From sequence record NC_034625.1: 32,735 nt of DNA; one strand, written 5' to 3'. Both the position numbers and the translations under genes were made by a program. This document shows positions 11,220 to 31,527 of the stretch, piece by piece. Every line of letters starts with the position of its first letter. The stretch's first letter is position 1. The notes beneath the pieces were generated by a model. That model was not told the DNA's origin, searched no databases, and saw only the letters and a list, made by a program, of their open reading frames with translations.

Positions 11220-11256
11220 CTTTCCATCTAGATAGAAATTTAAAATATGACAAATA

Positions 11257-13587: not shown

Positions 13588-13721
13588 AATTATTATATCT
13601 GTAAATGTAGAAAATAAAACTTAATTCTAATACATAATATAATGTATATCAGTTTTACTCTTTGATCTCATCATATTCAATTCATAAAATATATATTTGT
13701 CATAATTTGAGTTACGAATGT

Positions 13722-14780: not shown

Positions 14781-14852
14781 ACTTATCTATATAAAAATTT
14801 TCATTATGACAAATTTAAACATATATATGTCATAGTTTTAAAATTTTAGCTG

Positions 14853-15792: not shown

Positions 15793-18700
15793 ATGAGTTT
15801 CTTATTAAATCTTGGAGATTTAGGTACATTTTTTTCAGATGAGCTAACAGCATTAGAGAATTTTGCAAATTTCTTAAGCTCTGATTTTATAAACTTTTTT
15901 AGTGCAGTAGTTAATGATATTGAAAATGTTGTAAGTTTCTTAGGTCAAGCAATTAGTGATATTCCAACTTTTATGCAAAAAATTGCTAACAATTTCTTGA
16001 CGATTTTGCAAAACTTTGTACAAACTGCAATTCCAGTAGTTTCAGGATTTTTAACATTTCTTGAACAACAAATTATAAATGTATTTCAAGATTTGTCTTC
16101 TTTAGCTTCTACATTTATTAATGATGCATATTCATTTTTACAAGGTGTTGTAAATGCATTTGCAAATTTAATAAGTACAATAGTTCAAGATTTTCTAAAT
16201 AATTTTGGTCAAAATATGAAACATATTAGTTCTGCAATTTCTCAAGTTACTCAATTTTTAACTCCATTTATCGCTCCAGTCACTTTAGGAAAATTTTTGC
16301 CAGCAATAATAGATAAATTAGCTGAAATTTTGCCAGAAGTTGAAATTGATTTAGCGCCAGTTGGCTTAGGCGGAAAAATTCCAATTAACTTTGGAGAAAT
16401 TGTAAAAGCGTTTGCTGAAACTTCAGTTGACTTTTTAAATGAAGTTAGACAAGAAATACAAACTACGCTTAAGGAGTTTATAAAAGAGCCATTTATTTCA
16501 GATTTTAAAATTACTGCGAGAGAAATATTTAATGAAATTGGTCTTGGTGATTTACCATTTGCTGACCCACCATTTACACAAATAGCGAAATGGGTTGGCT
16601 CAAGATCATTTTCTGAAATAAAAGATCATTTAAGAGAAACAATTTATTTAACTGGATTTCCAGCATGGTTTACTGATGCTTATCTAGAATCTCCAGTTGA
16701 TGATTTTATTCCAAGAAATCCGTTATTTAGACCAGTAAATATAAGAGATGTAATTTTAGCTTCCCAATATGGAATTTTAGATTTTAGTGCAGTTTCGCAA
16801 TATGCAGAAAATAATTTGATAACTCCAAAAACTGCAAAATTAATGTATCAAAATGAGACTGCTAGACTTTTACAAAGAGCAGTTGAAGAAGGAATTAGAC
16901 AATTTATAGTTTCTCCAGAAAAAGCTTATCAAGAAATAATACAAAATGTAAATTTAGCTGGAAAGGATCTATTTTTAAAAGTTTTCTCTTTGGAGTATAA
17001 TTATGCAGTTCAAAGAATCGTAAGACAATTTTTAAGATCACTTTTGTCGAGAGCTTTAACGAATTTTGGAAGACCTTACATAGATTTAAAATTCCTAGAA
17101 TCTACAGTTCAAAAATTATTTAAAGAACTAAATTATCCTGAAGAAGTTCAAAATGTTTTCAACATAATGATTGAACAATCTCAAATTGTATACACTAATC
17201 AACTTTTATTATCACAACTAGAACAAATTACTAAGCTAGGAATATTTGACGAAAAGAAAGTAAAAGCAGAATTGAAAGCTAATAACTTTAATGAGCAAAT
17301 TGCACTTACAATTTTACAATATGAACTCCAATATGTACAATTACAATATATTCTTAAAGAACTTCAATTTAAACTACAAAATTATATTATTAGCACAAAA
17401 GACGCAGAAAATCAATTAAAGAAATTAGGCTTTGATTCATCTATAATTTCTGAGATAATTTTTGAATATCAAACAGCTCCATTAACAAAATATCAAATTA
17501 GCCAAATTGAAAGTTTGGCTAGAAAAGGATATTTATCAGTTGATGAAATTAAAAAACAATTACATTCATTAGGAGTAATTAAGGAATTTGAAGACATATT
17601 TATCAATTACACAAGTCAAGAAATTCAAATATCAACAACTTTAAGTATTGTAAAAGAACAATTAAGAAACTTCCTAATAGATTCAAAAACTGTAGAAAAT
17701 GAATTAAAAGTGTTGAAAATTAATGATTATTTAATAAATGAGATAATTCAAGAAGAATATAATATAAATATTGCTAAATTACAATTATCATATTTAGAAA
17801 CTTTAGCTAAGAATTTATACTATGATCAAGCTCAATTATCTAATGAATTATCCAAAATTTTGAAAGATAAAACTGCAATAGATCTTTATGTTCAAAGATT
17901 TTATTATGAATATGTATTTCCAAAAATTGTCAATTATTACGTAAGTTTAGCAAGGCATGGGATAATTGGAAATATTAAAAATTTACCAAAAGAAATTGTA
18001 GATTATGAAATTAATCCACAAATCCAAATTTTCCAACTTACAACAGAATTAGAATATATAAAATCTTTACTAAAAGATCTACAAATAACACCAACAAATG
18101 CTGAAAACGAGTTAATAAAATTAGGAATGCAAAAAGATTTAGCTAATTTATTTGTACAAACTTATATTCCGACACTTTATAGTTTACATACTATAATTGG
18201 AAATATTGTAAATGGACAACTCTTTAAAGTCGGAAAAGTACCCGTGAATCTAGGAAATGCTGAATCACAATTAAGACAATTAGGAATTCCTGAAAGTCAA
18301 ATAAAAATATTGTTAGAACAATATGCATCCAGTTTTGGTTTAGAAATTTGGAGAAAATACTTGCCTTCATTAAGTGTGATTGAGACCGCAATAAAGTATA
18401 ATTATCCAGAAAAACAATTAATTGACTATTCATTTATACCTTCTGAATTTCTTAACTTATACTCTAACTTATATCAATATGAACTAATTGGACAATATGT
18501 ACAATCCTTAAAGACTGACTATGTTCAATTATTAGTTTATGGAGTTCAAAATATTCAACTTGAAAGTATAATGAAACAATATGGAATAAATGAAGTGCTA
18601 TTAGGAGTTCTAAAATTATCAGCTCAAATTAAGAAAATATTAACGGCCTACCAAGAGTTATACTTAACACCGTCTAAAGCACTTTCTATAAGTGAATATG

Positions 18701-18978
18701 TATCAAATCCAACACAATTATTGCAAAAAGTATTTAGTGAATTTCAAGTTCCTAGTGATTTACAAAATACTTATCTTGAGTATGCAATAAATAGAAGAGT
18801 TAGGACATATGTAAGCGAAATAATCTCAACAATCAGTTTATTATTTGAGAAAGGCAAAATTGACTTAGGAACTGCTCAATCTTATTTACAACAACTACAG
18901 AAATATGGATTAACAAATGACGAAATTCAATTAATAATCCTCAATTGGCAGTTACGTTCAAATTTGTCAAGTTCATAA
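15793..18978 (+). CDS. Terminal fibre / largest virion protein, 1061 aa (SIRV2 ORF1070-like)
   Basis: Size; amphipathic helical N-terminus; repeated A/V-x-x-x-L-x-x-LG helical units. Confidence 0.88.
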   Translation: MSFLLNLGDLGTFFSDELTALENFANFLSSDFINFFSAVVNDIENVVSFLGQAISDIPTFMQKIANNFLTILQNFVQTAIPVVSGFLTFLEQQIINVFQDLSSLASTFINDAYSFLQGVVNAFANLISTIVQDFLNNFGQNMKHISSAISQVTQFLTPFIAPVTLGKFLPAIIDKLAEILPEVEIDLAPVGLGGKIPINFGEIVKAFAETSVDFLNEVRQEIQTTLKEFIKEPFISDFKITAREIFNEIGLGDLPFADPPFTQIAKWVGSRSFSEIKDHLRETIYLTGFPAWFTDAYLESPVDDFIPRNPLFRPVNIRDVILASQYGILDFSAVSQYAENNLITPKTAKLMYQNETARLLQRAVEEGIRQFIVSPEKAYQEIIQNVNLAGKDLFLKVFSLEYNYAVQRIVRQFLRSLLSRALTNFGRPYIDLKFLESTVQKLFKELNYPEEVQNVFNIMIEQSQIVYTNQLLLSQLEQITKLGIFDEKKVKAELKANNFNEQIALTILQYELQYVQLQYILKELQFKLQNYIISTKDAENQLKKLGFDSSIISEIIFEYQTAPLTKYQISQIESLARKGYLSVDEIKKQLHSLGVIKEFEDIFINYTSQEIQISTTLSIVKEQLRNFLIDSKTVENELKVLKINDYLINEIIQEEYNINIAKLQLSYLETLAKNLYYDQAQLSNELSKILKDKTAIDLYVQRFYYEYVFPKIVNYYVSLARHGIIGNIKNLPKEIVDYEINPQIQIFQLTTELEYIKSLLKDLQITPTNAENELIKLGMQKDLANLFVQTYIPTLYSLHTIIGNIVNGQLFKVGKVPVNLGNAESQLRQLGIPESQIKILLEQYASSFGLEIWRKYLPSLSVIETAIKYNYPEKQLIDYSFIPSEFLNLYSNLYQYELIGQYVQSLKTDYVQLLVYGVQNIQLESIMKQYGINEVLLGVLKLSAQIKKILTAYQELYLTPSKALSISEYVSNPTQLLQKVFSEFQVPSDLQNTYLEYAINRRVRTYVSEIISTISLLFEKGKIDLGTAQSYLQQLQKYGLTNDEIQLIILNWQLRSNLSSS

Positions 18979-18988
18979 ACTATAACTC

Positions 18989-19804
18989 ATGAGTGTAAAC
19001 CTCTGTAAATATGAAGCAGAAAATATATCATTTAAAGATTTAGAAAAGTTAAAAGATAATATATATTATGAAATTAAATATGATGGAACTCATGTCTGTT
19101 TAAAATTTGAGAATGAGCTAAAGATTCATACAAGAAAAGATATACCTCATGACAAAACTTTTCAAGAACTTTTTTTGAAAGTTCCAAATATTGAGGAAAT
19201 TATAAATTATATAAAGAAAAATAATCAATATATAATACATGGGGAACTTATACATAAAAAGACATCAGCATTACAGATTCACAAAAATGAAACTCCGGAA
19301 TTTATAATTTATGATGTCTTTGACAAAGAAAGTAACAAATATTTAAAACCAACTGAAGTTGATAGCGAAATTTATGCATGGTATCCAGAAATTTGTTTAG
19401 ATTTAGATGATTTACTTGATATTATAACTAAAGAAAAACTTGAAGGTTTAGTAGCTAAAATCTATAATCCGAAATTTGCAAATTGTGAAGAAGGCAAAAA
19501 CTTCAACTTATGTCTCTACAAATATAAACCTTATTTTTCAACTTTAGGAGTAATATTCAAGCCTATTAGAAGGGAAATTGATGTTAGACAATTATCATTT
19601 TTATTAGGAGAAATTGATAATGATTTAAAGAATAATAAAGATGAATGGTATAGAAATCATCCAGAACTTTATAAATTCTTTATCGAAAATAAAGATAAAA
19701 TAATATCTATTTTACAGAATAAGAATTTTGAATTACAAATTGAAAAAAATACACATTTAGACATTAAGAAAATTAAAGAATATATTACAAATTTCAAAAG
19801 ATAA
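18989..19804 (+). CDS. ATP-dependent ligase-superfamily nucleotidyltransferase, 271 aa, no OB domain
   Basis: Motif I EIKYDG, Ia HTR, III IIHGEL, IIIa FIIYDV, IV EGLVAK, V LYKYK; then a ~90-aa helical tail. Confidence 0.85.
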   Translation: MSVNLCKYEAENISFKDLEKLKDNIYYEIKYDGTHVCLKFENELKIHTRKDIPHDKTFQELFLKVPNIEEIINYIKKNNQYIIHGELIHKKTSALQIHKNETPEFIIYDVFDKESNKYLKPTEVDSEIYAWYPEICLDLDDLLDIITKEKLEGLVAKIYNPKFANCEEGKNFNLCLYKYKPYFSTLGVIFKPIRREIDVRQLSFLLGEIDNDLKNNKDEWYRNHPELYKFFIENKDKIISILQNKNFELQIEKNTHLDIKKIKEYITNFKR

Positions 19805-19823
19805 CAACATTTAGACCAAGCCA

Positions 19824-19862
19824 TATACATAATATTATGTATAAGCTATGTGTGTTTATTTC
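19824..19862 (+). promoter_or_regulatory. Class-3 promoter with perfect 20-bp palindrome
   Basis: TATACATAATATTATGTATA (19824-19843), TTTATTT at 19855, ATG at 19886. Confidence 0.8.
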
Positions 19863-19885
19863 TGTCAAGTTAATAATTTTTTCAT

Positions 19886-21586
19886 ATGAGCTTACCATAT
19901 AAAGTACGTTTTAAGTTACCGTTAGAATTTCTAACGTTACAAGACTGGAATAATTTTGTGCAAAATTTGTTATTTATAAATCAATATGGTTCAGCAAAGC
20001 TATTACAATATTATCAAAATGGGAATTTTCAAAATCTAAATGATGTAATTGCTGACTATTTATTTGTTTCAGCTTTAAAAGTAGCTGGATATAATGTTCT
20101 TCATAATTTATCACAACCACAAGCTTATACATTTGGGGAAGGAAAACAACAGCCATTTGAAAGCATGGCAAATAAACCAATAATTCAACTGAAGTCTGTA
20201 ATATTTCCAATTCTAAATTTTCAGATACAATTATCTAAAGTTAGTAAACAATTACAGCTACTAATTCCTAAACTAACAAGTAAAATTATAACTCCAAACC
20301 AAATTGCTGGAACACAATTCCAATTTTCTGGAACTTCAAATGTACAAACATTAATAGAAGATTATTTAGATCCATCGTATTTACAAACTTGGAGAGAAAT
20401 AATAATACAAAATCTTGGAACTTCTGCAGTTCAAATTAATAATTCTATCTATCTAATGCCTAAAAATTGTTTAAAAATAACTGCAAGTTCACCAAGTGAA
20501 ATTCAACTAACTGCTCAAACTCCAACTTTGCTAAGTGAAGAAATTGAATTTGTTGGAATTCCAATTGTTACTTATACAATTACAATAACAAATAGTCAGC
20601 CAGATCCAACTCCTTCACCATTTCAACAATTACTTCAACTTAATCTTTCTTCAATATTATCGAGTCCAAGTCAGCTTTTGAATTTACAATTTTGCTTAGA
20701 TGTTAATTGTAATACTCCATTATATGCATGGATTGAAAGTTATACTTCTAATTTATCAAATGTTTATATTTGGGTAAATTTGCCAACTTCAATACCAGCA
20801 AATTCATCAATTACAATTTATATGTTTATAAGAAATTCAATTCAGTATCCTTATACTGGAATGAGACCAGATTTATCCGTGAGTTATGCACAATATGATA
20901 ATGGAAAAAATATATTTTTAATTTATTTCAACGGAAATGAACCATTATCTAATTTTAATAATCAAGGAAATTCATTAACTCAAATATCTACAACCGGACC
21001 GTTAGGAAATACAATAAATGCAATTTATATAAGCGGTTATAATTCACATTTTGGATTTGTATATACTCCCAAATATATATCAAATCAGCCAGTAATTGCA
21101 GAATCATCTGTAATAGATTTAGGAAATCAAACAGGTGGATTAAATGCAGATAATGGATTTTCTTCAATTGTTGATAGTACTTCAATTTCTAGTTTAAATG
21201 CAATAAGTGTAGATATGGGGTATTCTGGTTCTTATTTTTCTAATGATTACTTTATAAGTGGAACTCAAACTTCCAATGTAAACCCAGCAGGAACTGCAGT
21301 ATCACAGTGGCTTTATGCATGGGTCGTATATTCTGGATCATCAAGTACTTCATGGTATGGATGTATAGCACCTCAACTTTACAGTTCTTCAGGAGGATAT
21401 TGTGGTACAGTTGGCAATAATCCATTTTCTAGTTCTTCTCAACTATATTTAGGTATAATTGGTAGTGTAAATTCTAGTTATCAATGGCAAACTGCATGGA
21501 ATTTTATGAGGTTAAGAGCTTATCCTCCAAATAACGTAATGCCTTCAAATTCTCAACCACAAAAGACAATAGTTCTAGTCACGTGA
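19886..21586 (+). CDS. Minor virion protein, 566 aa (SIRV2 ORF564-like) with DUF2341-like domain
   Basis: YTITITNSQP...PLYAWIE...IWVNLP.SIPANSSITIYM is the DUF2341-type pattern; S/T/N-rich beta C-terminus. Confidence 0.8.
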   Translation: MSLPYKVRFKLPLEFLTLQDWNNFVQNLLFINQYGSAKLLQYYQNGNFQNLNDVIADYLFVSALKVAGYNVLHNLSQPQAYTFGEGKQQPFESMANKPIIQLKSVIFPILNFQIQLSKVSKQLQLLIPKLTSKIITPNQIAGTQFQFSGTSNVQTLIEDYLDPSYLQTWREIIIQNLGTSAVQINNSIYLMPKNCLKITASSPSEIQLTAQTPTLLSEEIEFVGIPIVTYTITITNSQPDPTPSPFQQLLQLNLSSILSSPSQLLNLQFCLDVNCNTPLYAWIESYTSNLSNVYIWVNLPTSIPANSSITIYMFIRNSIQYPYTGMRPDLSVSYAQYDNGKNIFLIYFNGNEPLSNFNNQGNSLTQISTTGPLGNTINAIYISGYNSHFGFVYTPKYISNQPVIAESSVIDLGNQTGGLNADNGFSSIVDSTSISSLNAISVDMGYSGSYFSNDYFISGTQTSNVNPAGTAVSQWLYAWVVYSGSSSTSWYGCIAPQLYSSSGGYCGTVGNNPFSSSSQLYLGIIGSVNSSYQWQTAWNFMRLRAYPPNNVMPSNSQPQKTIVLVT

Positions 21587-24655: not shown

Positions 24656-24786
24656 ATGTTTATATACTTAAATTGTAGTAAAAATAAACTCATAGCTTAT
24701 ATATCATATTATGTATATAGCTTGATCTAATTGATCTTATAACGAATTAGCAATATTTTAATTTGTCATGAACTTGAGAAATAATT

Positions 24787-30548: not shown

Positions 30549-30727
30549 ACGACTTATCACCCGTAAATGAAAATATGTTATATGACAAATTTATAACTTT
30601 CTTTATTTTTCGATTTACAAACTTTCTAAAATGTTAGTATTACTATTTGAAACGTGAGAAAAATTATGCATGGAGAAAGAAAACAAAAAACAAAAAAATA
30701 AAAAATAAAGAATACGAAAGAAAAAAA

Positions 30728-31318: not shown

Positions 31319-31527
31319 TTTTTATCATCTACAAATCATCATACGTTATATGACAAATTTAAAAGTATCTTTAATTTTAGATTTACGAATTTCCTAAAAT
31401 GTTAGTATTATTATCCCAAACATGAAAAAAAATATTGATAAAAATAGAAGATAATAAACATAAAAATAGGAAGTTAAAATATAAAATTATAAAAATAAAA
31501 TAAAATTAAGGAAAAAAGTTAAAAAAA

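Follow-up and report, generated by a model that had tools for sequence, protein, structure and literature searches.

The genome of Sulfolobus islandicus rod-shaped virus 10 (SIRV10; Rudiviridae, Usarudivirus), which originated from Norris Geyser Basin, Yellowstone, raises the question of what an enzyme of the polynucleotide ligase type would join in a virus that carries the gene for it among its virion genes. The record (KY744230.1 / NC_034625.1), which equals the window in length and is identical across positions 18000-21000, where the two were compared, makes up the whole 32,735-base window analyzed here, is described in its deposition as a partial genome, and labels all 49 of its 49 genes ‘hypothetical protein’, including the ligase-type gene, open reading frame 34 (ORF34; ARQ96501.1). 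A preliminary description of this DNA had placed an ATP-dependent ligase at positions 18989-19804, and ORF34, which runs from an ATG start to a TAA stop over 271 codons, was found exactly there on the + strand. That description had left three options for the product: RNA repair, the sealing of single-stranded DNA or hairpin ends, and an adenylyltransferase. The first of these, as an RNA ligase, fits best, in that comparisons with Pfam, the PDB, and BFVD all rank RNA ligases first. On balance, we slightly favor the reading that ORF34 is a two-domain ATP-dependent polynucleotide ligase that represents a new RNA ligase clade and has a role in rejoining RNA cut during infection.

The evidence for a ligase-type enzyme begins with the catalytic motifs. 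Nucleotidyltransferase (NTase) motifs I, Ia, III, IIIa, IV, and V are all present in ORF34 at the residues given in Table 1, as had been stated from the sequence, and motifs Ia to V occur in the same order as, and match, those of proteins of the Pfam family RNA_ligase (PF09414) and of the Rnl3 enzyme Pab1020. Conservation of the catalytic residues was assessed over 22 viral and 9 cellular relatives. The motif residues are invariant or nearly so in the 22 viral family members, and those invariant across both the viral and the cellular families comprise K30, G33, E86, E101, F105, D109, P121, E152, G153, K157, N171, N173, K178, Y179, and P181 in the NTase domain. In motif I, K30 and G33 are invariant (26 sequences), and D32 and E28 are nearly invariant across both families. 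A single family member has N at position 32, which is permitted by the RNA ligase form of this motif, Kx(D/H/N)G (PMC4797309). The KYDG of ORF34, previously taken as a DNA-ligase-like sign, is for the same reason not diagnostic. In the Rnl3 enzyme MthRnl, the Glu two residues ahead of the catalytic Lys contacts adenine N6, and T117-R118, which T48-R49 of ORF34 (motif Ia) matches by sequence pattern, is required for phosphodiester formation (PMC4797309).

The remaining motifs follow the same pattern. In alignments with the PF09414 group and Pab1020, motif III falls on their GE and motif IIIa on FvvFDIw and FFLFDV, respectively. Between these two motifs lies a loop (K90-E101, KKTSALQIHKNE) in which K91, T92, S93, Q96, H98, N100, and E101 are invariant in the viral family and whose aligned counterpart in related PF09414 proteins reads ‘KGxSPtxxE’. 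In the motif V region, K180 is nearly invariant in both families alongside the invariant residues listed above. Searches with Pfam gave a match to PF09414 (E = 3.6e-11, 43.9 bits against a cut-off of 27) that covers residues 25-162 and profile positions 3-161 of 171. The match to DNA_ligase_A_M (PF01068; E = 3.4e-7, 30.6 bits against a cut-off of 26.2) spans only residues 16-91 (profile positions 12-86 of 204), that is, motifs I-III. In PHROGs, the ORF34 family corresponds over its full length to phrog_12949, of ‘unknown function’, and UniProt automatically names the SIRV5 and SIRV11 copies ‘RNA ligase domain-containing protein’. The motif and domain matches of ORF34 lie far beyond chance, and the motifs, the PF09414 match, and the predicted fold agree with its earlier designation as an ATP-dependent ligase-type nucleotidyltransferase.

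The fold was predicted with AlphaFold. A first model, built from a viral-only alignment of 22 close relatives, had a predicted local distance difference test score (pLDDT) of 70.6 and wrongly rendered the motif IV-V region as a low-confidence helix; it was superseded by a model from a combined alignment to which distant relatives had been added (pLDDT 81, predicted template modeling score 0.67). In the better model, beta strands fall at motifs I, III, IIIa, IV, and V, the K90-E101 loop is the sole segment with pLDDT < 50, and residues 183-268 form six helices with block pLDDT values of 75-95, lower in the final few residues. DNA ligases are distinguished by an OB domain with motif VI, which ORF34 is predicted to lack: the better model has no beta barrel after the NTase domain, and the Pfam scan of ORF34 at E ≤ 10 found no OB-domain family. 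The description of ORF34 as OB-less thus held up at the level of a predicted structure.

A Foldseek search of the PDB returned 98 matches at E ≤ 1e-3, and all 50 that were listed are polynucleotide ligases of the nucleotidyltransferase superfamily. Among the matches listed, Rnl3 enzymes came first (Pab1020, E = 1.4e-8; the Palaeococcus pacificus ligase, ~1e-7; MthRnl, TMq 0.51-0.53), then T4 Rnl1 and fungal Trl1 (4e-7 to 1e-6), then Rnl5 of Naegleria (NgrRnl; 5e-6), and then T4 Rnl2, level with T4 DNA ligase at 8e-6. Archaeal and other DNA ligases followed from 9e-6 upward, and the DNA ligase alignments were confined to the NTase domain (~215 columns). A structure search of BFVD placed the SIRV11 ortholog first and RNA ligases of giant viruses and phages next. 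The comparison with RNA and DNA ligases that had been proposed as a check therefore put RNA ligases ahead in both databases. Collectively, these observations suggest that ORF34 is very probably a functional ligase-type enzyme without an OB fold.

What stands in place of the OB fold is more substantial than the short helical tail of the preliminary description; it is an 89-residue conserved domain that is common to the cellular homologs. It is basic (isoelectric point 9.2), and the NTase domain (residues 1-182) is acidic (isoelectric point 5.6). The longest invariant run of the protein in the viral family, F204-LLGEIDNDL-K214, falls within this C-terminal domain (C-domain), as do W220, N223, and H224, which are also invariant in the viral family, and E208, H224, L227, and F230 are invariant in the viral and cellular families alike. 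A profile of the C-domain by itself gave no Pfam family and no PDB match of significance, the best being an unrelated docking domain (E = 0.019). When the family profile was aligned with T4 Rnl2 (hhalign), only motifs I-IIIa aligned, without significance (E = 0.03, probability 1.6%), and the C-domain remained unaligned. From the model, the C-domain appears to be a previously undescribed helical domain at the position where DNA ligases carry the OB fold.

A separate metagenomic PF09414 group (268-318 aa; P0042-P0049 and P0052-P0054) has a conserved C-terminal segment, LPxLP(D/E)SEIxGAIDK...AMPLIAK...KH. A C-domain common to this group and ORF34 was considered from the likeness of ‘GAIDK...DL’ to ‘GEIDNDLK’ and was ruled out, as the profile-profile alignment is limited to residues 19-162. 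The group thus shares the NTase domain only (hhalign probability 99.1% to its proteins of 270-300 aa), its C-terminal segment is unrelated by profile to the C-domain of SIRV10, and by sequence it matches Rnl3 (E = 2e-10) and Rnl5. It represents another uncharacterized small RNA-ligase-like architecture.

Judged by its predicted domain make-up, ORF34 would belong to none of the families Rnl1-5 as they have been defined (PMC4797309). The homodimeric Rnl3 enzymes of archaea (Pab1020 of Pyrococcus abyssi, MthRnl of Methanobacterium, and the Palaeococcus pacificus Rnl) are its best structural matches (E = 1e-8 to 1e-6, TMq up to 0.53) and share with it a T-R motif Ia, a Glu two residues before the catalytic Lys, helices after motif V, and an archaeal, thermophilic setting. 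However, Rnl3 enzymes consist of four domains (N-terminal, NTase, dimerization, and C-terminal; PMC4797309), and ORF34 does not follow this plan: its catalytic Lys is at position 30 rather than 97 (MthRnl), it is without the N-terminal domain, only 89 residues follow motif V where Rnl3 has the dimerization and C-terminal domains, and it has 271 rather than ~380 aa. The match between the ORF34 family and Rnl3 sequence profiles is likewise non-significant (E = 0.7). The Rnl2 family (phage T4 RNA ligase 2 and kinetoplastid RNA-editing ligases such as REL1) has the same plan as ORF34, with the adenylyltransferase domain at the N-terminus and a small helical C-domain behind it, on which T4 Rnl2 depends for step 2 and nicked-duplex binding (PMC4797309). 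ORF34 also has the PF09414-type NTase domain of this family, but T4 Rnl2 is 63 residues longer and the Foldseek ranking puts it below Rnl3, Rnl1, and Rnl5. The nick-sealing Rnl5 (Naegleria gruberi and Deinococcus radiodurans) is alike in NTase structure (E = 5e-6, root-mean-square deviation ~5 Å over ~200 columns) and is the best PDB sequence match of the ORF34 profile, albeit non-significant (E = 0.1). It carries an OB-like module at its N-terminus and lacks a C-terminal domain (PMC4797309), the reverse of ORF34.

The other families are further removed. Rnl1 combines an adenylyltransferase of the family PF09511 with a tRNA-recognition domain at the C-terminus; PF09511 is unmatched by ORF34, which is ~100 residues shorter, and the Foldseek match (E = 4e-7) has a root-mean-square deviation of 14-16 Å over the full length. 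As for Rnl4, whose ligase is fused to a kinase-phosphatase and Hen1 or has them as partners, neither the other 48 viral proteins nor the genes beside the cellular homologs contain a kinase, phosphatase, or Hen1 domain. Minimal ATP-dependent DNA ligases (Chlorella virus ligase and bacterial Lig E), which we take to comprise NTase and OB domains in ~270-300 aa, resemble ORF34 in size, in the KYDG motif I, in the partial PF01068 match over motifs I-III, and in the NTase fold. They differ in that ORF34 has no OB fold or motif VI and its C-terminal third is helical. On sequence grounds, ORF34 and its chromosomal relatives from Sulfolobales and Caldisphaera appear to form a separate clade. We would go only tentatively as far as to propose that ORF34 founds a sixth ATP-dependent RNA ligase family, with a new substrate-binding domain, that is confined to thermoacidophilic Thermoprotei and their rudiviruses.

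This clade emerged from searches of increasing depth. A single-sequence search of 5.8 billion clustered proteins recovered 37 clusters that are at least 66% identical to ORF34, all from rudivirus-like hot-spring contigs and all with a full-length, intact reading frame. A pass with the family profile (HMMER) over 1.84 billion representatives yielded only 17 proteins at E ≤ 1e-3, suggesting that the ligase family is isolated. Addition to the query of P0039 and P0050, which align into the C-domain, uncovered a sister family (308-324 residues) with chromosomally encoded members in Stygiolobus caldivivus, Acidianus sp. HS-5, Sulfurisphaera ohwakuensis, and Sulfolobus sp. S-194, to which a genome scan added homologs from Metallosphaera javensis and from metagenome-assembled genomes of Caldisphaera and Thermoprotei. 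These proteins are 21-34% identical to ORF34 over the whole length, with profile E-values of 1e-49 to 1e-82 that are inflated for the two cellular homologs included in the query alignment. Most receive no Pfam call, with the Caldisphaera homolog reaching PF09414 (E = 7e-7). They share with ORF34 the catalytic motifs, the helical C-domain, and its four invariant residues, and they differ in having ~50 extra N-terminal residues and H-K in place of T-R at motif Ia. Cysteines C6, C37, C166, and C175 are invariant in the viral proteins but missing from the cellular homologs. The sequences suggest that these cellular proteins are uncharacterized ligase-type enzymes and the closest relatives of ORF34 outside rudiviruses. 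A further copy in Sulfuracidifex metallicus (L006 2229-2738; 169 aa) begins after motif I, is without the catalytic lysine, and is probably a truncated or decaying gene. No ORF34 homolog turned up in S. islandicus or Saccharolobus, in searches of limited sensitivity.

Among rudivirus genomes, tblastn found ORF34 homologs only in SIRV4-11 and the isolate V60, and none in SIRV1, SIRV2, SIRV3, V3, or OM401714, which supplies the distribution that had been called for as a check. In every rudivirus contig examined, the ligase gene directly follows a gene of ~1058 aa and in most it precedes one of ~550-566 aa, an arrangement that holds even in contigs in which the ligase is only 68-70% identical. 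The G+C content of ORF34 (23%) is like that of the genome (25%). Together, the fixed locus and the genome-like composition suggest that the ligase is an old resident of this virus lineage. In a maximum-likelihood tree of the fiber protein, encoded directly upstream, the ligase-less V3 is sister to the ligase-bearing V60 (support 100/100) and is nested among ligase-bearing viruses, with SIRV1 outside. V3 has thus lost the ligase cassette secondarily. A recent insertion is thus ruled out by the fixed position in the 68-70% contigs, by composition, and by the nesting of V3. Both V3 and V60 grow lytically in the laboratory (PMC9319562), so the ligase is dispensable under these conditions, and the two form a natural plus/minus pair.

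Ratios of nonsynonymous to synonymous substitution rates (dN/dS) between five divergent copies of the ligase gene are 0.08-0.27 pairwise, compared with 0.15-0.23 for the fiber gene and 0.36-0.53 for the downstream gene, and the ligase gene is under purifying selection. The notion of a decaying or neutral passenger gene, which its dispensability and its absence from SIRV1-3 and loss in V3 might otherwise recommend, is already contradicted by these ratios, by an intact full-length reading frame in 37 of 37 clusters, by the invariant catalytic residues, and by the retention of a promoter-like element, and we give it practically no credence.

If ORF34 follows the mechanism of its superfamily (PMC4797309), K30 would attack ATP to form an enzyme-AMP intermediate, the AMP would be transferred to a 5'-phosphate end, and attack by a 3'-OH on the adenylylated end would seal the break. 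By analogy with the extra domains of Rnl1, Rnl2, and Rnl3, the C-domain may bind the polynucleotide. The substrate would be RNA with 3'-OH and 5'-phosphate ends, and the role would be to rejoin tRNA, rRNA, or viral mRNA broken during infection. Taken separately, RNA is probably the natural substrate of ORF34; a specific role in repair or counter-defense is rather doubtful.

The kind of break that could be repaired is constrained by the other genes of the virus. Pfam scans of the other 48 SIRV10 proteins identified a coat protein, a Holliday-junction resolvase, a Rep-like protein, a Cas4/PD-(D/E)XK nuclease, glycosyltransferases, and DNA-binding proteins, but no polynucleotide kinase (Pnk), phosphatase, 2H or HD phosphoesterase, RtcB, or Hen1, and so bear out the earlier remark that there is no Pnk partner. 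Cleavage by HEPN-type ribonucleases yields ends with a 2',3'-cyclic phosphate and a 5'-OH. A classic ATP-dependent ligase is unable to join such ends without healing, and a host RtcB-type ligase handles them. Since no end-healing enzyme is encoded, the breaks that ORF34 could fix directly would be cuts by metal-dependent nucleases and not those of the HEPN type. The proposal that ORF34 counters HEPN or toxin ribonucleases would consequently have to be modified for HEPN enzymes. PIN-domain toxins, which we presume to be abundant in Sulfolobales, are a candidate source of breaks on which it could act.

A link to the ring nuclease AcrIII-1 had also been suggested. The absence of AcrIII-1 from SIRV10 was confirmed: neither the Pfam scans of the other 48 proteins nor tblastn with SIRV1 ORF114, a DUF1874/STIV_B116-like protein, detected DUF1874. 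Homologs of ORF114 were found by tblastn in SIRV1-3, SRV, and several other crenarchaeal viruses and in none of the Yellowstone usarudiviruses (SIRV4-11, OM401712-OM401714). The tie to the ligase is weak, and a trade-off between the two was ruled out, because DUF1874 is missing throughout the genus, including the ligase-less V3 and OM401714. ORF34 as a known anti-phage defense component was likewise rejected, with no PADLOC match for the viral or cellular proteins.

Several observations weigh against the RNA ligase reading. TM-scores to solved ligases are modest (0.42-0.53), and no significant PDB sequence match was obtained with single-protein, family, combined, or C-domain profiles, so that placement is by structure comparison only. 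Sequence alone cannot settle a preference for RNA over DNA. SIRV10 has no tRNA gene, nor any end-healing partner or defense-related neighbor that would link the ligase to RNA repair, and the neighborhoods of the cellular homologs give no consistent functional hint. Rudiviral anti-defense genes cluster in the variable genome ends, and the ligase gene sits in the conserved central/virion block. Viruses without the ligase grow lytically in the laboratory (PMC9319562), and MthRnl, of the structurally nearest family, also joins single-stranded DNA (PMC4797309, PMC2577357).

The last point bears directly on the alternative that ORF34 seals viral DNA, be it post-Holliday-junction nicks, covalently closed hairpin ends, or single-stranded replication intermediates. 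Its nearest structures, the Rnl3 enzymes, circularize single-stranded DNA as well as RNA, a ligase for 5'-phosphate and 3'-OH ends can act on DNA nicks without an end-healing partner, and the other gene products of the virus include the Holliday-junction resolvase, Rep-like protein, and Cas4/PD-(D/E)XK nuclease named above but not a second ligase. The location of the gene in the conserved central block next to virion genes, the partial DNA_ligase_A_M match, and weak matches to ligases of non-homologous end joining over motifs I-III point in the same direction. Nick-sealing DNA ligases, however, use an OB domain, which the predicted fold lacks, and the whole-domain Pfam and structure rankings favor RNA ligases. 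In addition, SIRV1-3, V3, and OM401714 replicate without the ligase, which places it outside the core replication scheme. We consider DNA sealing unlikely. A variant is suggested by rudiviral DNA itself, which is held in A-form in the virion and ends in covalently closed hairpins. As the A-form has an RNA-like helix geometry, an RNA-ligase-type enzyme beside the virion genes could act on viral DNA; it is nonetheless distinctly unlikely that ORF34 is an enzyme of RNA ligase ancestry that seals nicks or hairpin ends of A-form DNA in replication or packaging.

Lysyl-AMP chemistry without strand joining, in the form of adenylylation of RNA or DNA at the 5' end, cyclization of a 3'-phosphate to a 2',3'-cyclic phosphate, or de-adenylylation, is improbable given that the residues used for steps 2 and 3 by characterized ligases (the T-R of motif Ia and the motif V lysines) are all conserved. 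Side reactions of this sort, namely 3'-phosphate cyclization and AppRNA de-adenylylation, are known for MthRnl (PMC4797309), and the C-domain of ORF34 is of no type recognized by sequence. Some RNA-ligase-type domains (Rnl4) need a partner protein to ligate, but no partner gene is linked to ORF34 in viruses or to its homologs in cells. It is very improbable that ORF34 serves in virion assembly, as its sole or second job, for example by attaching terminal fibers in parallel to the tail-fiber attachment by T4 RNA ligase 1. The gene always directly follows that for the terminal-fiber/minor-capsid protein, and its BFVD neighbors include an ‘RnlA RNA ligase and tail fiber attachment catalyst’, yet gene position alone is weak evidence, the cellular homologs have no virion context, ligase-less relatives produce infectious virions, and the strict conservation of catalytic residues shows that it is the enzymatic activity that is under selection.

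The enzyme class to which the favored RNA ligase reading assigns ORF34 is well established, and automatic annotation already flags an RNA ligase domain. Full-text literature searches, with subscription journals outside their coverage, returned no mention of a ligase for rudiviruses or usarudiviruses, and the word ‘ligase’ is not present in the paper on SIRV4-11 or in that on V3, V60, and V65 (PMC9319562). A 2023 review assigns all published work on ligases of thermophilic viruses to Rnl1-type enzymes of moderately thermophilic phages. As far as we found, ORF34 is the first ligase to be noted in a rudivirus or in any virus of Sulfolobales or other crenarchaea. If the RNA ligase reading is true, an archaeal virus supplies its own strand-joining activity to a host in which our searches found no homolog, and the viral ligase and unannotated proteins of Sulfolobales define a clade with a new C-terminal domain. 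At 271 residues, ORF34 would rank among the smallest polynucleotide ligases. The source virus grows at ~75-80°C and low pH, and the enzyme is presumably hyperthermostable; thermostable RNA ligases are sought for small-RNA library preparation. The cultured pair V60 (plus) and V3 (minus) makes the role of the ligase directly testable.

Table 1. Positions of ORF34, its domains and motifs, its neighbors, promoter-like sites, and cellular homologs (window coordinates, except where a locus is named).
Feature	Coordinates	Strand	Basis or remark
ORF34, 271-aa ligase-type nucleotidyltransferase	18989..19804	+	ORF list and deposited annotation; Pfam PF09414; phrog_12949; dN/dS
NTase (adenylyltransferase) domain, residues 1-182	18989..19534	+	AlphaFold strands at motifs I, III, IIIa, IV, V; Foldseek
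Motif I, K30-Y-D-G	19076..19087	+	K30 is the predicted AMP-attachment lysine; E28 two residues before
Motif Ia, T48-R49	19130..19135	+	Invariant in viral family; H-K in cellular family
Motif III, IIHGELIH (H84-G-E86-L)	19232..19255	+	E86 invariant in viral and cellular families
Conserved flexible loop K90-E101, KKTSALQIHKNE	19256..19291	+	Between motifs III and IIIa
Motif IIIa, EFIIYDVF (F105, D109)	19298..19321	+	Both residues invariant in viral and cellular families
Motif IV, LEGLVAKIY (E152, G153, K157)	19439..19465	+	Invariant in both families; beta strand 153-159 in model
Motif V region, NFNLCLYKYKPY (Y-K178-Y-K180-P)	19499..19534	+	Beta strand 174-179 in model
C-terminal all-helical domain, residues 183-271 (89 residues)	19535..19801	+	AlphaFold; conserved residues
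Promoter-like element, TCAAATTT-GTC-A	18958..18969	+	19 nt before ORF34 ATG; inside last fiber codons in SIRV10
Upstream neighbor, 1061-aa fiber/minor-capsid protein	15793..18978	+	Homolog of SIRV1 ORF1070; ‘minor capsid protein’ in V3/V60
Downstream neighbor, 566 aa	19886..21586	+	Homolog of SIRV1 ORF562; DUF2341 match
Octamer ATTTGTCA, examples from sites within 4696-31358	11248-11255; 13695-13702; 14807-14814; 18962-18969	-; +; -; +	
Octamer ATTTGTCA, further examples	24761-24768; 30583-30590; 31351-31358	+; -; -	
Cellular homologs, 303-324 aa, ‘hypothetical’	L007 10001-10963; L009 10001-10927; L011 10001-10945; L020 5803-6714; L021 5848-6822		

The locus itself bears on how the ligase gene is expressed. 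ORF34 had been described as lying between two genes that are adjacent in SIRV1/2, and this is correct for SIRV1, in which ORF1070 and ORF562 directly adjoin (AJ414696) and the ORF34 homolog is missing. The start of ORF34 10 nt after the fiber gene, whose stop is at 18978, is likewise correct for SIRV10. In most ligase-bearing genomes, the fiber protein ends in ...QLRS(N/A)Y, as it does in SIRV1 and V3, and a conserved spacer, ATAAATTTGTCATAATTTTTAGTTTTTACAC, precedes the ligase ATG (31 nt, or 43 nt in two genomes). The fiber reading frame of SIRV10 (window 18955-18978) is seven codons longer and ends in ...QLRSNLSSS, as it does in the metagenomic relatives L029 and L030. The 10-nt gap thus results from a seven-codon extension of the fiber gene into the promoter spacer and is peculiar to the SIRV10 lineage.

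In SIRV10, this extension overlaps a promoter-like element that other ligase-bearing genomes retain within their spacers as (A)TAAATTTGTCA, with TAAATTT-GTC ~20-27 nt before the ligase ATG. Thirteen copies of the octamer ATTTGTCA were counted across the genome compared with 3.8 +/- 2.1 expected, a number that none of 100 shuffles reached, and 7 of the 13 precede annotated starts by 18-34 nt on the correct strand (ORF23, 28, 30, 34, 39, 45, and 47). In most SIRV1/2 promoters, the TATA box is closely followed by a GTC motif, according to a review that cites Kessler et al. 2004 (PMC5569661). The octamer probably marks a promoter of this TATA-box-plus-GTC type and could define a co-regulated gene set. 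These sequence features point to a separate promoter of the standard rudiviral type for the ligase gene, which would not simply be read through from the fiber gene. A scan for bacterial sigma-70 promoters and terminators was uninformative, the virus being archaeal.

The chromosomal loci of the cellular homologs were also inspected. No conserved operon partner was found, and the loci are non-syntenic beyond a transporter of the major facilitator superfamily (MFS) that lies, divergently oriented, upstream of the homolog in three genera (L009 7936-9654; L020 4399-5493; L021 3450-5138). The divergent MFS transporter points to long-standing synteny on the chromosome and away from a mobile element. 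A HEPN and nucleotidyltransferase (MNT) pair is found two genes upstream of the Stygiolobus homolog, and PaREP1 genes adjoin the Acidianus and Stygiolobus homologs (L007 8012-8756; L009 10975-11307; L007 6784-7486). The proximity of HEPN-MNT and PaREP1 genes may be due to chance in genomes that are rich in them. Elsewhere in SIRV10, a scan of 43 proteins gave a match to PF13337, the BrxL-like Lon ATPase domain (E = 1e-14), and, in a different protein, a match to PF23343 (Rep ORF2/G2P).

The presence of an RNA ligase gene within a structural gene block has a precedent in phage T4, in which rnlB (RNA ligase 2; L039 8637-9641) also lies within the virion genes and adjoins gene 24. On the 3' side of the ligase gene, two metagenomic rudivirus contigs (L037 5814-5925; L027 3271-3380) deviate from the usual layout of a palindrome followed by ORF35. 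This palindrome, a perfect 20-nt sequence (TATACATAATATTATGTATA) at window positions 19824-19843, lies between the ORF34 stop and the ORF35 start, is kept in V3 and in most ligase-bearing relatives, and has a similar counterpart in SIRV1. A regulator could bind there, or the palindrome could mark where a transcript ends.

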